Assembly (NCBI RefSeq): GCF_000143415.4 | Contig: NW_003314401.1 | Coordinates: forward strand, 124,001-188,000 | Length of the DNA stretch: 64,000 bases | Origin: Selaginella moellendorffii | Taxonomy: Eukaryota > Plantae > Lycopodiophyta | Direction: 5' to 3' | Program-made: the position numbers and the translations under genes | Notes under the pieces: model-generated | What the model saw: the letters and a program-made list of their open reading frames with translations, nothing else | Told to the model about the DNA's origin: nothing | Database searches by the model: none | Part shown: positions 55,845 through 60,170 of the stretch, piece after piece | Layout: every line of letters begins with the position of its first letter | Numbering within the stretch: position 1 is the stretch's first letter

Positions 55845-56267
55845 TGTAAGCTCCTGAATTTGGACTTCCCGGGAGGTCACCCAGCTCAGTACTATTCAAA
55901 CCCAAGGACGCTTAACTCCAACTATCCCAAGACCCTTAACCGATTGGAAAAGGGGGTGCACTCTTGTTCATGGGCCCTTTCCCTCTATATTTGAACCCCA
56001 TGGATCGTCTCTCGAGTCGTTCCCTTTGGTTGCTTACAATCCACCACGCTTCCCTGCAAGTTCACGCCCTCGTGAACGGAAGCTGAGAGCCACAGCTCTC
56101 CCGAGAGCCTCGCTCTCTTGACACCTTACCTCTCGGGTCGAGCCCAGTGGGAGCAAACTGGACCAGCCAGATGTCAATCAACATGTGGTGCGATTCCCCT
56201 AGCCAACCAACAGAGTCGGACCCGAGACCCCTCTGATACCAAATGTAAGCTCCTTGAATTTGGACTT
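55845..56267 (-). mobile_element. Cassandra-type TRIM unit: LTR, ~200-bp internal region with PPT and tRNA-iMet PBS, 24-bp LTR end
   Basis: PBS tggtatcagag (rc 56231-56241), PPT-like agggaagcgtggtggat (rc 56039-56055), partial LTR 56244-56267. Confidence 0.85.
55862..55917 (-). other. 5S rRNA-derived segment (internal Pol III promoter region) inside LTR; second copy 59989-60044
   Basis: rc reads agttaagcgtccttgggtttgaatagtactgagctgggtgacctcccgggaagtcc, versus plant 5S AGTTAAGCGTGCTTGGGCGAGAGTAGTACTAGGATGGGTGACCTCCCGGGAAGTCC. Confidence 0.9.
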
Positions 56268-56269
56268 AG

Positions 56270-56585
56270 TCTCTGGCTCGATCTCGGACCCGATTTTGGA
56301 TCCGACTTCGGATTCGGTTTTGGACTCGATCTCGGACTCGATCTCGGACCCGATCTCGGACCCGACCTCGGACTCGACCTCGGACTCGGTCTCGGACCCG
56401 ATCTCGGACCCGACCTCGGACTCGACCTCGGACTCGGTCTCGGACCCGATTTCGGATCTCGGACTCCGTCTCGAACTCGGTCTCGAACTCGGACTCGAAC
56501 TCGGTCCCCGAGTCAGTCTTGGACTCGATTCCGAACTCGATCTCGAACTCGGTCCTAGAGTCGGTCTTGGACTCGATCTTCGACT
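56270..56585. repeat. Degenerate 6/12-bp tandem array (ctcgga/ctcgat/cccgat)
   Basis: Directly visible; probably the U3 of the captured Gypsy element's LTR. Confidence 0.85.
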
Positions 56586-57075
56586 TGGTCCCATCCAATG
56601 AACTCTTTGTCATTTTGGTCATGCTTTCGGGGTTCCTTTAGCCTACGACACCTCGGCGAGTTGGTTCCTTAAAACTCCACCACCCATAGAAGAAGTTCGA
56701 TGCCCACATCGAATGTCTCGTTTTATCCTACGACTTGTTGACCATGTCTCCGGGGGCATCCCCCCACTTAGCGGTGTGCCTAAGTTAGCCTCCCCGGCCA
56801 AGAGCCCATGACAACGGAATATAGGTGTCCCTATACTCCTCACCTCACCACGCCCTAGTATAGGGTCGGGACTTGAACCCAGCCTTGCTTTACTAGGGGG
56901 TTGGGACTCGAACCCAACCTCCGTAGAATACGTCTACGGATTCGACATCCCCGCAGGGAGTTGGGCGTAGCTCCCTACGCCTGGTCGACCTAGCTAACCC
57001 ATGCTAATTAGCTTACCTTCGGCGCGCCTTCGGGTCCCAACATATGCCATTTGCTCAACTTTGCAAATTGATATT

Positions 57076-59867
57076 TTAATTGAACTTTGCATAAGTACAT
57101 AGAGTTCTGCCTTGCAGAAATTCCTCCACTAGATCTCGCGCGTTCGCTAGGTTCTCCTCCAGTTCCCATGTTGCTTTGTAGTGTGGAAATCCTTTCCACT
57201 TCACATGGAACTCTCTCACCTCGCGTCCTTGTCGCTTGCTCTTGCGCGCATTGAGGATGGCCTCGACTTCGTATTCCTCTTCCCCTTGGATAACCTCAGG
57301 TAAAGGTCTTACTTGGTCCTTGCGAAGCGGATCCTCAAAGTACGGCTTGAGTAAGTTCACGTGGAACACTGGGTGCATCTTCCTCATCTCTCAAGGAAGT
57401 CGGAGTCGGTAAGCCACTTTACCGATTCGTGCCTCAATCTCGTAAGGCCCCGCGAACCTGCTTAAGGAACTCAAGATCAATTCATTTACAGGAATACATG
57501 CATTTTTACCTTTGGGTCAACTTTCGGCTGATCCCACTTGGTAGCCTGAGGTTCTTGGTGTTCAGCCACACCTTCTCCCCAGCTTGGAACTCTACATCCC
57601 GGCGCTTTAGGTTCGCATACTTGGTTTGCCTTTGTTGAGCCCGTTCCAAAGAATCCCTCACTAGATTCCAAATGTTGAGTCTTTCCGCCGTGAATGCCTC
57701 CACTGCGGGTAGCTCTCCATGATACTCGGCCACGCCGAGTTCCACAGGACCTTCAATAGCTCGCCCATTGATGACTTCCCATGGACTCACCCCGATACTC
57801 GAATGTGGTGAGTTGTTATAACACATTTCCACAAGTCCCAAATGACTTACCCAATCGGTCTGGTCTCCCGAGACATAGCATCACAAATAATCCTCCAGCT
57901 GCCTATTCACCCTTTCCGTTTGTCCGTCTGTCAAGAAGTGTTAGGACCACCAAACTTGACTTAATACCCCATATCTGTTTGTGGGTGATAGGCTGTGCTG
58001 AATTTCAACTTGGTGCGATACTGTTCCAAGAGGGTCCTCCAGAACCTACTAGTGAAGATCTTATCTCGATATGAGATAATCTTTTCTGGCCTTCCCCGCA
58101 CTCGAACCACTTGTTCGAAGAACAGCTTTGCCACACCTTCCGCATCCACTTCCGTTGTCGTGGGTATGAAATGTGCCATCTTCGAAAATTGATCCACCAC
58201 CACGAATATCGCATCGAACCCCTCGCTTGGGGGTAGTCCCGTGATGAAGTCCATCGTAAGACATTTCCACGGACGATCTGGAATTGGGATGCTTTGCAAC
58301 AAGCCCCCACTAGCCTTAGTCACGGCTTTGACCTGCTAATATGTTGGACATGTCTTTACATAGTCTTGGACGTCCTTAGCCATATCTGGCCAATGGTACT
58401 TCCTCTTGAGTAAGCCCATCGTCTTGGGCACTCCGCCGTGTCCCGCAAGAGGTCCATCATGACACTCTTCTAAGGCTACCTTCCTTAGTCCCCCTTCTGG
58501 AACATATACCCTCATTTGCTTGTAATAAATGAGTCCGTTGCGTTCTGCATAGCCCGTTTTCTCTTCCGTTGGCAGCTCACCTCTCTGGTGAGCTTCCCGC
58601 GCCTCCAGATTCCTCAACAACACTTCTTGTGCTAGACCATCGTTCTCATATGCTGTCCGCACATCGTCCTAGAAGGTTGCTGTTGTGCTGGATATCGCCA
58701 ACCTCAAGCTCGCTTTTCGACTTAGCGCATCTGCCATGATGTTGCTCTTCCCAGGCTTGTACAGAATCTCGCAATCAAACTCGGCCAAGGCATTGGCCCA
58801 CCGACCTTATTTCCCTCTCAGGTCGGGTTGTGACAAGAAGTGTTTCGTTGCCACATTGTCCGTGTAAACCTTGAAGTGTCTCCCAAGGTAGTGTCGCCAC
58901 TCCTTGAGCGCCTTGACCACCGCAAACAATTCCTTCTCGTGGGCAGGCCACTTCCGTTGAGCCTTTTCCAGCTTCTTCGAGAAGAACGCTACTGGATGGT
59001 TGTCTTGCTTCAAAACTGCGCCCAACGCAAAGTCCGAAGCATCCGTGTCTACCTCGAAGTCCTTACCAAAGTCTGGTAATGCCAACACGGGAGCCTTCCT
59101 CAATTTCCCTTTGAGGTGGACGAATGCCTCCTTGCATTCCGCTGTCCATACCATCTTCCCTTTTCCTGTTTGGTCCGTTAAGGGCAAGGCTACTCTCGAA
59201 TAGTGTCTGATAAACTTTCGATAGTAGTTGCATAGCCCCAAGAACGCCCTCAACTCATGTACATTCGAAGGTCGCTCCCATTCCTGGATCGCTTGGACCT
59301 TCTCCGGGTCCACCTTGAGCCCGTCCTGGCCCACCACATGCCCGAGAAACTTTACCTCTTGTTGAGCAAAGTCACATTTGCTCTCTTTAGCATACAGTTT
59401 GTGTTCCCTTAGTTTCTCAAACACCTTCGCCAAGTGTTTGGCATGTTCCTCTAGCGTCTCGCTATAGATCAGGATATCGTCGATATAGACGACCACGAAG
59501 TGATCCAGATAGGGTACAAAGATGTGGTTTATCAACGCCGAAAACGTTGCCGGTGCATTGCACAGCCCAAAGGGCATCACCAGAAACTCAAAGCTCCCAT
59601 ACCTCGTTCGACAGGTTGTCTTCTCGACATCTTCCTCAGCTACCCTGATCTGGTAGTATCCTGACCTTAGGTCAATCCTCGAGAAGTATTTTGCCTTTCC
59701 CAACCTATCAAACAGGTCCTCGATCCTTGGCAAAGGGTACTTGTTCTTCTTGGTATACTTGTTGAGCAACCGGTAGTCTATGCACATGCGCATAGATCCA
59801 TCTTTCTTTTTCACTTGCTCAACCTAACATACCCTTTGTCCACCAACTCCTCTAGTTGGCTCTTGAG
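57076..59867 (-). pseudogene. pol: Captured Gypsy chromovirus pol (element E): RT-RNase H-integrase-chromodomain, 5'-truncated
   Basis: [65 protein letters not shown]; a few premature stops; no gag or protease. Confidence 0.92.
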
Positions 59868-59899
59868 TTTAGGGTTTAGGGTTTAGGGTTTAGGGTTTA
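59868..59899 (+). repeat. Interstitial plant telomere repeats (TTTAGGG)4 TTTA
   Basis: Direct reading. Confidence 0.97.
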
Positions 59900-59902
59900 A
59901 CC

Positions 59903-59968
59903 GCGCAGCGGAAGCGTGGTGGGCCCATAACCCACAGGTCCCAGGATCAAAACCTGGCTCCAATACCA
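59903..59968 (+). pseudogene. Retro-copied initiator tRNA-Met (positions 10 to CCA end)
   Basis: gcgcagcggaagcgtggtgggccCATaacccacaggtcccaggatcaaaacctggctccaataCCA matches plant tRNA-iMet; lacks first 9 nt; encodes CCA; abuts LTR. Confidence 0.93.
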
Positions 59969-60170
59969 AATTGTAAACTCCTGAATTTGGACTTCCCAGG
60001 AGGTCACCCAGCCCAGTACTATTCAAACCCAAGGACGCTTAACTCCAACTATCCCAAGACCCTTAACCGATTGGAAAAGGGGGTGCACTCTTGTTCATGG
60101 GCCCTTTCCCTCTATATTTGAACCCCATGGATCGTCTCTCGAGTCGTTCCCTTTGGTTGCTTACAACATT

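Follow-up and report, generated by a model that had tools for sequence, protein, structure and literature searches.

A Cassandra-type TRIM combined with a chromovirus pol segment in Selaginella moellendorffii, a probable fossil of faulty reverse transcription

Cassandra TRIMs, also called "TRIMp3" elements, carry 5S sequence (Kalendar et al. 2008, cited in PMC7215508 and PMC10886601). Their autonomous partner was still called unknown in the literature of 2020 and 2024, which agrees with the original prediction made for the locus described here, according to which the helper of these elements lacks clear identification. Units bounded by highly similar outer LTRs and flanked by a target-site duplication (TSD), two published criteria of template-switch complexes, have been attributed to aberrant strand transfer between two RNAs (Sabot & Schulman 2007, PMC1950507). 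Furthermore, LTR-mediated capture involves microhomologies with a median of 6 bp (PMC5131818), and read-through beyond the stop sites in the primer tRNA gives plus-strand DNA that is non-complementary after transfer (PMC8599865). Here, we describe a hybrid unit of 4,321 bp (55845-60165; Table 1) from the spikemoss Selaginella moellendorffii, found in a 64,000-nt stretch of DNA that was analysed as a whole (the window).

In element sense, which is the minus strand, the unit consists of a 5' LTR, anti-tRNA-iMet, (CCCTAAA)4, a chromovirus pol (E), a 12-nt array and a 24-nt LTR remnant, followed by a PBS, a Cassandra internal region, a PPT and the 3' LTR. All the structural parts listed by the original prediction were recovered, as were the junctions at 56267, 59867 and 59903. 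As it had stated, a Cassandra-type TRIM is combined with the pol of a chromovirus, according to the 5S and Pfam matches, and the apparent lycophyte is S. moellendorffii. The unit interrupts the RT gene of a second chromovirus (H), whose pol frame closes exactly once the unit and one ACATT are taken out: 54189-55844 makes exactly 552 codons, position 60171 falls in the frame of the ORF ending at 62339, and the alignment of H with the captured RT has zero residues gained or lost at the insertion site. Both termini are the intact TG...CA of normal Cassandra LTR ends, and, as had been claimed, one 5-bp TSD surrounds the entire unit. Therefore, the unit entered as a single DNA, and these features point to one insertion. 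As in template-switch complexes, a TSD is present on both sides and the outer LTRs are nearly alike (191/194 positions match, the other 3 being transitions). A complete internal LTR and two complete cores are absent; the middle LTR is reduced to 24 nt, and the place of the first core is taken by the tRNA copy, the telomere repeats and E.

The TRIM itself resembles Cassandra in its short LTRs with a 5S rRNA-derived domain, in which box A (AGTTAAGCGTCC) and box C (GGGCTGGGTGACC, or GAGCTGGGTGACC in the 3' LTR) are exactly 18 nt apart, in its iMet PBS located few nucleotides from the 5S domain as in ferns (it lies 33 nt past box C), in its PPT and in its 5-bp TSD; no ORF was found in its core. 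LTRs of 194 bp and a core of 191 bp plus PBS, for a total below 1 kb, correspond to a TRIM build. A canonical copy should measure about 590 bp, inside the published range of 565-860 bp. The internal region is 72% identical to a second Cassandra copy (63621-64000), and the core is common to both. The 5S_rRNA match spans the full model (1-120) in both LTRs, but a 32-nt internal deletion keeps its scores slightly below the gathering score of 38. The literal Cassandra pattern of Kalendar et al. 2020, RGTTAAGYRHGY[15-25]RRRATRGGTRACY[5-200]TGGTATCAGAGC, is unmatched since box A, box C and PBS are each 1 base off. In addition to this deletion and these three bases, the unit differs from described Cassandra elements by its 3.7 kb of foreign sequence and by its host, as the literature searched places Cassandra in ferns and seed plants only. 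The Selaginella TRIM may have acquired its 5S domain independently rather than by common descent with known Cassandra elements.

Table 1. Features of the hybrid unit and of its target, with positions in the window
Feature	Position	Strand	Basis
Host chromovirus H, target of the unit	52878..62738	+	LTRs 52878-53211 and 62351-62738; TSD CTACC
TSD ACATT, element-sense 3' side	55840-55844	.	direct reading; same as 60166-60170
Cassandra 3' LTR, 194 bp, TGTAAGC...GCTTACA	55845-56038	-	98.5% identical to 59972-60165
5S-like domain, 3' LTR	55848-55935	-	Rfam 5S_rRNA, 33.8 bits, E 2.8e-4
Box C, 3' LTR	55875-55887	-	18 nt from box A
Box A, 3' LTR	55906-55917	-	18 nt from box C
Cassandra PPT GCAGGGAAGCGTGGTGGAT	56039-56057	-	purine-rich tract adjoining LTR TG
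Cassandra internal region	56039-56229	-	aligns with second Cassandra copy at 63745-63900
PBS TGGTATCAGAGG	56230-56241	-	11/12 match to Cassandra/iMet PBS TGGTATCAGAGC (PMC7215508)
TT spacer, element-sense 5' of PBS TGGTATCAGAGG	56242-56243	-	direct reading
Middle LTR remnant, last 23 nt + one inserted A	56244-56267	-	AAGTCCAAATTCAAGGAGCTTACA vs LTR end AAGTCCAAATTCAGGAGCTTACA
Junction J1, LTR remnant / putative E U3	56267/56268	-	direct reading
12-nt tandem array	56268-56600	-	18 phased copies, period 12
Putative E U3	56268-56758	-	includes the 12-nt tandem array
Putative E PPT TAAGTGGGGGGA, then TG	56759-56770	-	sole G-run PPT-like tract with TG after
E 3' untranslated region	56771-57075	-	direct reading
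Captured pol, RT start to stop past chromodomain	57076-59867	-	Pfam, tblastn
Chromodomain (Chromo)	57115-57273	-	Pfam
E in-frame stops	58807-58809, near 58663, 58335, 57880, 57390	-	alignment to relatives
E frameshifts	near 57950, 57500	-	alignment to relatives
Integrase core (rve)	57982-58278	-	Pfam
Integrase zinc finger (Integrase_H2C2)	58342-58488	-	Pfam
RNase H (RT_RNaseH, RT_RNaseH_2)	58822-59148	-	Pfam
RT (RVT_1)	59335-59811	-	Pfam
E 28-nt deletion, conserved RT segment	near 59815-59830	-	alignment to relatives
Telomere repeats (TTTAGGG)4+TTTA	59868-59899	+	exact repeats; (CCCTAAA)n in element sense
3-nt filler ACC	59900-59902	+	between telomere repeats and tRNA copy
Initiator tRNA-Met sense copy, position 10 to 3' CCA, 66 nt	59903-59968	+	Rfam tRNA
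PBS TGGTATTGGAGC inside tRNA copy	59957-59968	+ strand copy	10/12 positions match
Cassandra 5' LTR, 194 bp	59972-60165	-	Rfam 5S_rRNA match; pair alignment
5S-like domain, 5' LTR	59975-60062	-	Rfam 5S_rRNA, 35.0 bits, E 1.3e-4
Box C, 5' LTR	60002-60014	-	18 nt from box A
Box A, 5' LTR	60033-60044	-	18 nt from box C
TSD ACATT, second copy	60166-60170	.	direct reading

The foreign sequence is located in a transposon nest, and the sole run of N in the window is at 40533-40632. The order of domains in E (RT, RNase H, integrase, C-terminal chromodomain; Pfam matches between 59814 and 57115) is that of chromoviruses, and its best relatives are chromovirus polyproteins. E is not a complete element: it starts around residue 330 of a 1,228-aa relative (tblastn against full-length relatives; reading frames -2/-1/-2), its 5' truncation falls exactly at the telomere repeats, and gag, protease, PBS and 5' LTR are absent from the segment. 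A search for an LTR pair or a TSD belonging to E found none, and a later independent insertion, the alternative named by the original prediction, is not indicated. About 8 lesions were counted in the 2.8 kb of E (a 28-nt deletion, 5 in-frame stops and 2 frameshifts), against 2 disabling lesions, both stops, over 4.8 kb in H (binomial p=0.007). The LTRs of H and of the chimera are equally divergent (K2P 0.0153 and 0.0157). Since H is as old as the unit, this excess suggests that the pol of E was probably already dead at the time of capture. The putative PPT of E (TAAGTGGGGGGA) resembles those of its relatives L002 (GGTGGGGGAGA) and L003 (AATGGGGGATAG), and the putative U3 has no further copy within the 64-kb window. 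Two tRNA T-arm-like motifs are present in the 3' untranslated region of E (about 56850-56960), a region that gave zero Rfam or ARAGORN matches.

The tRNA copy gives an Rfam match of 29.8 bits (gathering 29) at 59903-59957 on the + strand, covering model positions 10-63 with anticodon CAU; its sequence extends as far as the CCA, which ends at 59968, and next come an AAT spacer (to 59971) and the 5' LTR. In element sense, this corresponds to a PBS extended into a 66-nt anti-tRNA, the PBS copy departing from the canonical 3' end of iMet at two adjacent positions. The copy is assigned to initiator tRNA-Met by its GGG/CCC anticodon stem and by A54/A60, which we take to be initiator marks. To our knowledge, tRNA sense sequence with its post-transcriptional CCA, fused in PBS register to U5, is encountered only in reverse-transcription intermediates. 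As read from the sequence, the contiguous tRNA copy is the strongest sign of reverse transcription. The telomere repeats, of which 0.03 chance matches are expected in the window, have no demonstrated source.

None of the three internal junctions falls in sequence that recurs elsewhere in the window. At J1, where a microhomology had been proposed around 56262-56275, GGACT(T) (56262-56267, 5-6 nt) is in phase with the GGACYC/GAYCTC units of the 6/12-nt array, and the remnant carries the C variant seen in the 3' LTR. Because the original break sequence of E is lost, this microhomology is deduced from the periodicity of the array, where GGACT stands before 3% of positions; its size would be comparable to that in LTR-mediated capture. 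The second junction (59867) shares at most AA, and the third (59903) has zero overlap and a 3-nt filler.

From the single copy inspected, we estimate at roughly 0.6 the probability that integrase inserted, in a single event, an abnormal multi-template cDNA of a Cassandra-type TRIM. Several templates would have been copied in a single reverse-transcription complex of this TRIM. Plus-strand strong-stop DNA would have run on through the primer tRNA rather than halting after 18 nt, and its 3' end would consequently have been unable to make the normal second transfer. The minus strand would have copied Cassandra RNA across the PBS and 23-24 nt into U5. A switch at the GGACT microhomology would then have taken it into the tandem repeats in the U3 of an RNA of chromovirus origin, and synthesis would have continued along this RNA as far as the RT start, where the template would have ended in telomere-type repeats. 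The two odd 3' ends would have been joined with 3 nt of filler, and the resulting double-stranded DNA, having two good LTR ends, would have been inserted by integrase. The chromovirus template would most likely have been the transcript of a dead, 5'-truncated copy, possibly abutting telomere repeats, and therefore a passenger rather than the genomic RNA of the particle's owner. The truncation of E at the telomere repeats suggests either such a passenger transcript or nuclear end processing; if telomerase made the repeats, part of the assembly would have occurred on free DNA ends in the nucleus and not in the particle. The need for three non-standard joins in one product counts against a multi-template cDNA, as do the telomere repeats with no demonstrated source, the dependence of the J1 microhomology on the array periodicity and the two differences between the tRNA-derived PBS copy and iMet. 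The hybrid is probably a dead end, as its first T4 run lies inside the anti-tRNA and RNA polymerase III, the predicted transcriber of Cassandra from the 5S promoter, would therefore be unable to copy it; the canonical unit has one T4 run only, at LTR positions 88-91.

This scheme retains from the original prediction the chimera, its single insertion, the microhomology, the lycophyte host and the passage of RT along Cassandra RNA beyond the PBS before a switch to chromovirus RNA; the telomere repeats, the filler and the truncation of pol had been left unexplained. Its inference on the helper fares less well. The family of E would be the autonomous helper of Cassandra, and E genomic RNA would have entered an E particle together with Cassandra RNA, the RT of which particle would have been forced by primer tRNA read-through to finish on cDNA of its own genome. 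The chimera would then be a true co-packaging record, and, in lycophytes at least, Cassandra would have its autonomous partners among the E-clade chromoviruses, which we consider doubtful. An E-derived template did share one reverse-transcription product with Cassandra, and 5-bp duplications are common to both. Moreover, two close relatives of E (59-63% identical in RT-RH) have the iMet PBS TGGTATCAGAGC and LTRs that start with TGTTACA and TGTAAGA and end with GTGACA and GTTACA (TGTAA/TGTTA...TTACA/TGACA in the E-clade relatives), close to TGTAAGC...GCTTACA; pear Cassandra likewise starts with TGTAAC (PMC4079214). However, the putative LTR of E starts with TGCCCCC, unlike Cassandra, and the termini of H (TGTCAGG...CTTGACA) are also similar to those of Cassandra. 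An iMet PBS and a 5-bp TSD are, besides, frequent among plant LTR elements. E was probably dead when captured, its RT lacking 28 nt of a conserved segment, and since it starts at RT, right after the telomere repeats, it is devoid of the 5' region where packaging signals are usually located. The telomere repeats add a third type of template to this product and indicate promiscuous template use, so that co-occurrence with E fails to identify the owner of the particle. Recent work also favours generalist mobilisation (PMC13570524).

Rearrangement after integration appears unlikely. A canonical or three-LTR tandem Cassandra would have resided at ACATT, and a later double-strand break near its first PBS would have been repaired with filler made up of stray Cassandra strong-stop cDNA with its tRNA, repeats added by telomerase and a chromovirus fragment, either DNA or cDNA. 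TSD-flanked three-LTR Cassandra arrays are common (PMC4079214, PMC7215508), and telomerase is documented to leave interstitial repeats at breaks (PMC2246262); on the + strand, antisense E ending in CTCTTGAG followed by (TTTAGGG)n has exactly the form that telomerase generates at a broken 3' end, and end joining is compatible with a 3-nt filler and short microhomologies. Nevertheless, several independent filler pieces would be required at one break, the tRNA-bearing cDNA would have to join the resident 5' LTR in perfect register, the first internal domain left no trace, and the TSD and outer LTRs are intact. A misjoin by collapse on the two 194-bp LTRs, which are 98.5% identical and 4.1 kb apart in a transposon nest, or on other repeats, is very improbable since it would not yield a TSD with exact closure of the host frame, the internal junctions are unique within the window and its only run of N is the one at 40533-40632.

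On the multi-template cDNA reading, the chimera can be viewed as a clear fossil of faulty reverse transcription and as a weak clue to the mobiliser of Cassandra. Since Cassandra, which occurs across vascular plants, has no known autonomous partner, any physical link between its cDNA and a coding element is a lead directly testable in S. moellendorffii. This locus would be a rare natural specimen in which plus-strand strong-stop DNA copied nearly the whole primer tRNA and was yet integrated, and the fusion of telomere repeats to retrotransposon cDNA bears on the processing of stray cDNA ends. The locus also extends 5S-bearing TRIMs to a lycophyte; should the Selaginella element be homologous to the Cassandra of ferns and seed plants, the origin of the lineage would shift back to the base of vascular plants.

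Among described systems, the complexes of Sabot & Schulman (PMC1950507) resemble the unit in that a single TSD encloses the whole, the outer LTRs are almost identical and an internal LTR separates two cores. However, they combine two members of one family by way of R homology, with the middle LTR retained in full, whereas the Selaginella partners are a TRIM and a chromovirus, with a 24-nt LTR stump fused to a foreign U3, and a tRNA copy and telomere repeats are added. LTR-mediated retroposition, as for Bs1 of maize and the Drosophila retrocopies of Tan et al. 2016 (PMC5131818), also copies foreign RNA between two stretches of an LTR element, there by microsimilarity-dependent switches. Like the unit, such chimeras combine 5' and 3' truncation with a lack of poly(A) and retain both LTRs for integration, and some of their junctions contain short de novo filler; by contrast, the Selaginella carrier is non-autonomous, and its passenger is a retrotransposon pol instead of a cellular mRNA. 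In OsajLTRA10 and SmoLTRA4 (Gao et al. 2016, PMC4717578), TRIM LTRs flank a retrotransposon coding region. In the former, a duplicated 25-bp PBS-containing segment flanks the coding part, which recalls the duplicated LTR end and PBS described here; the latter is a 4.4-kb Gypsy-type element also from S. moellendorffii, but its LTRs of 104 bp indicate another family. Both were read as intact TRIM parents, with ORFs of 1,218-1,577 aa (PMC4717578), whereas the coding part of the unit is truncated, dead and joined via a tRNA copy and telomere repeats, which argues for a capture and not a parent. Finally, as in retroviral tRNA-primer read-through (PMC8599865), the plus strand would have gone on beyond the 18-nt PBS to copy the body of the primer. 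Such read-through was described in vitro and in methylase-mutant cells as an integration block, with a predicted disruption of the second strand transfer (PMC8599865), whereas the Selaginella product was apparently rescued, integrated and preserved in a plant genome.

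The chimera, a 4,321-bp Cassandra-type insertion read on the minus strand, lies within the RT gene of the host chromovirus H and is flanked on both sides by the five bases ACATT. The pol ORF of H runs for exactly 552 codons to position 55844; on the far side, position 60171 keeps the frame of the ORF ending at 62339. When H is aligned at this site (...HYSDI|VLPLT...) with the RT of the captured chromovirus segment (E), no residue is gained or lost once one ACATT is subtracted, this frame continuity being derived from coordinate arithmetic and from alignment of the separate pieces. 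Since the frame of H closes without one ACATT and the TG...CA ends are intact, these data show that the chimera is a single integrase-type insertion. Hence, the original prediction of a unit with one 5-bp TSD that entered as a whole is borne out.

Features of the chimera and of its host element
Feature	Position	Strand	Description
5' LTR / 3' LTR of the chimera	59972-60165 / 55845-56038	-	194 bp each
Filler and telomere repeats	59868-59902	element sense	3 bases, then (CCCTAAA)4 and a partial repeat
E pol	59867-57076	-	first RT residues to stop after chromodomain; Pfam and tblastn to full-length relatives
PPT-like tract of E (putative)	56759-56770	-	TAAGTGGGGGGA then TG; after 3' untranslated region
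U3 of E (putative)	~490 nt after PPT-like tract	-	includes phased 12-nt tandem array 56268-56600
Cassandra LTR stump, chimera interior	after E U3 in element order	-	last 23 nt and one extra A
Segment after LTR stump	element sense	-	TT, PBS TGGTATCAGAGG, 191-nt core, PPT, 3' LTR
Host chromovirus H	52878-62738	+	LTRs 52878-53211 and 62351-62738; TSD CTACC

H is young, its pol ORF being uninterrupted apart from the insertion. Its 3' LTR has an additional 52-bp repeat unit, and its 5' LTR is followed by GTTTGATTCAGATTG, with no TGG-type PBS seen there. Annotated genes are absent within 10 kb of the chimera locus, and no usable ORF was found between 32 and 52.8 kb of the window. A third Gypsy element (34642-46698; RT 36475-37905, integrase 45320-46366) is interrupted by a 7.1-kb LTR element nested in it (38157-45315). 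The nested element has LTRs of ~1.1 kb and carries the PBS TGGTATTAGAGG, shows no detectable pol and contains the only N run of the window (40533-40632). Of the genes in the window, two without introns are present in the protein collection, one for a lectin receptor kinase and the other for a PPR protein. Their cluster mates at 90% identity are S. moellendorffii proteins from another scaffold, which is probably the second haplotype; the window thus belongs to this lycophyte and is neither human nor animal DNA. The PPR-gene region has a partly inverted segmental duplication (10404-19893 versus 27148-31076, 64-91% identity), with genes for a lectin receptor kinase and a P450 beside it.

The two LTRs of the chimera begin with TGTAAGC, end with GCTTACA and are three transitions apart. 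On the minus strand, they match the whole length of the Rfam 5S rRNA model with 35.0 and 33.8 bits, slightly below the curated threshold of 38, a shortfall due to the loss of 32 nt from the 5S body. In each LTR, box A and box C both deviate by one base from the published Cassandra search pattern used for comparison (PMC7215508), and their spacing is exactly 18 nt. Furthermore, the core is 72% identical to that of a decayed second Cassandra copy (63621-64000). This copy is older and consists of a 3' LTR and a core extending past the window edge. It shows many C-to-T and G-to-A changes, 64 nt of the 5S domain are gone from its LTR, box A and box C among them, and its core is partly doubled in tandem (63786-63879 and 63907-64000).

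Directly after the 5' LTR, in element sense, ATT is followed by 66 nt complementary to initiator tRNA-Met, from the CCA end to position 10. The plus strand gives a tRNA hit with anticodon CAU at 59903-59957, scoring 29.8 bits against a threshold of 29, and the sequence runs on to CCA at 59968. It combines a GGG/CCC anticodon stem with A54/A60 in the T-loop, the signature of initiator tRNA, and its 3' 18 nt are present in plant small-RNA tables. The window contains four PBS-like sites of iMet type, and in three of them position 7 is T rather than C (39294-39305, TGGTATTAGAGG; 51960-51971, TGGTATTAGAGC; 59957-59968, TGGTATTGGAGC), which may reflect a Selaginella tRNA-iMet variant or repeated C-to-T decay. 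Moreover, the Cassandra PPT region (56039-56057, element sense GCAGGGAAGCGTGGTGGAT) and the tRNA-iMet sense strand (59909-59925) have the exact 13-mer GGAAGCGTGGTGG in common. This likeness covers tRNA positions 13-29 (17/18 with one gap), and the decayed copy has the same tract with G-to-A changes (63745-63763). The PPT of this TRIM lineage may be tRNA-derived or able to pair with the read-through plus strand.

The tRNA copy is in sense, carries the post-transcriptional CCA and is in PBS register with U5. A tRNA with CCA joined to U5 in this way occurs in one place only, the primer end of minus-strand DNA. The left end of the chimera therefore most likely derives from plus-strand strong-stop DNA, which would have copied the primer tRNA far past the usual 18 nt. 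HIV-1 work has shown that, once the second transfer has taken place, a plus strand with such read-through is not complementary (PMC8599865), a reason for abnormal resolution. Judging from the right-hand unit, the minus strand would have copied Cassandra through the PBS and 23-24 nt of U5 before leaving it, perhaps by a switch at a microhomology of 5-6 nt, the size reported in LTR-mediated capture (PMC5131818). The GGACTT of the LTR stump is in phase with the array units GGACYC/GAYCTC. This fits such a switch but is modest evidence, since the break has cost E its original bases and 3% of the array positions are preceded by GGACT. The 24-nt stump was also considered as the native end of E's own LTR, implying a shared U5. 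This was rejected because it forms a perfect 7-bp inverted terminus with the Cassandra LTR start, not with the putative start of E, and because the array periodicity ends at GGACTT.

The template switch originally proposed leaves out the telomere repeats, as well as the state of E and the transcription of the product. On the plus strand, E antisense (...CTCTTGAG) is followed by (TTTAGGG)4TTTA, ACC and the tRNA. Two readings fit this order. The E template may have been a transcript starting in telomere-type repeats beside a truncated E copy; the cDNA would then have reached the template 5' end and gained a few untemplated bases. Alternatively, telomerase may have extended the free cDNA 3' end, and interstitial repeats made by telomerase at breaks are documented (PMC2246262). 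Downstream of the 5' LTR, T4 first occurs within the anti-tRNA; therefore, the chimera is predicted not to be transcribable by polymerase III and is probably a one-off.

The opening motif of E aligns with LKKQLIELLEKGFIQ of its relatives. Since E starts at this RT motif, its gag, protease, PBS and 5' LTR are missing. In 2.8 kb, E has lost 28 nt of a conserved RT segment and acquired five in-frame stops plus two further frameshifts, whereas the gag of H contains two stops and its 1,274 pol codons contain none. LTR divergence is nearly equal for H (5 transitions/332 sites, K2P 0.0153) and for the chimera (3/194, 0.0157), indicating that both have been resident equally long. Nevertheless, eight of the ten lesions fall within the 37% of the compared sequence belonging to E (p=0.007). 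Hence, E was most likely already dead before capture. The 3' untranslated region of E (56850-56960, minus strand) also contains two tRNA T-arm-like motifs (GGTTGGGTTCGAGTCCCAACC and GGCTGGGTTCAAGTCCCGACC) with an anticodon-arm-like hairpin upstream, and neither Rfam nor ARAGORN calls a tRNA there. They may have been left behind by a tRNA-derived element, e.g. Helenus, which is reported in S. moellendorffii (PMC10886601).

In keeping with the original prediction, the literature still gives Cassandra's partner as unknown (PMC10886601, PMC7215508). The proposal that the E family is this helper draws on the presence of an E template in the same product as Cassandra. Furthermore, two of the closest relatives of E (RT-RH 63% and 59% identical; complete or almost complete contigs) carry the PBS TGGTATCAGAGC and LTRs that start with TGTTACA/TGTAAGA and end with GTGACA/GTTACA, like TGTAAGC...GCTTACA of Cassandra; the start of pear Cassandra (TGTAAC..., PMC4079214) is also similar. 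However, E was most likely dead at capture, lacks the 5' region where packaging signals usually lie and has a putative LTR start of its own (TGCCCCC). Moreover, the telomere-repeat template indicates unspecific template use, iMet PBS and 5-bp TSDs are widespread, and the ends of H are similar too. We therefore regard the E family as an unlikely helper. As a relic of reverse transcription gone astray the chimera is well documented; as a pointer to the helper it is weak.

A later insertion of E by itself, checked as the alternative to a single event, is rejected since E lacks an LTR pair, a TSD, gag and protease. Likewise, the chimera is not SmoLTRA4 of Gao et al., which has 104-bp LTRs and an intact ORF. 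No relative of E above 63% identity was found by a word-indexed protein search or by HMMER over 1.84 billion representatives. This blank carries no weight because H, though nearly intact, has no relative above 58% identity in the same collections: Selaginella transposon proteins are simply absent from them. Exact look-up of 12 ORFs of the chimera and its two host junctions, some junction-spanning, gave none on record, so no independent assembly was found. A metagenome scan with a 20-nt LTR motif gave one chance match, in a bacterial gene (HWGSPNSGA).

A 5S-bearing TRIM in a lycophyte appears to be new, none being reported in the three searchable papers that mention both Cassandra and Selaginella. 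By published criteria (PMC1950507), a complex that arose through pre-integration template switching is recognised by a TSD and near-identical outer LTRs. Such complexes, LTR-mediated capture and large elements with TRIM LTRs are already known. What is new here is that a single integrated product combines a Cassandra-type carrier with a chromovirus passenger, an almost complete copy of the primer tRNA and telomere repeats.
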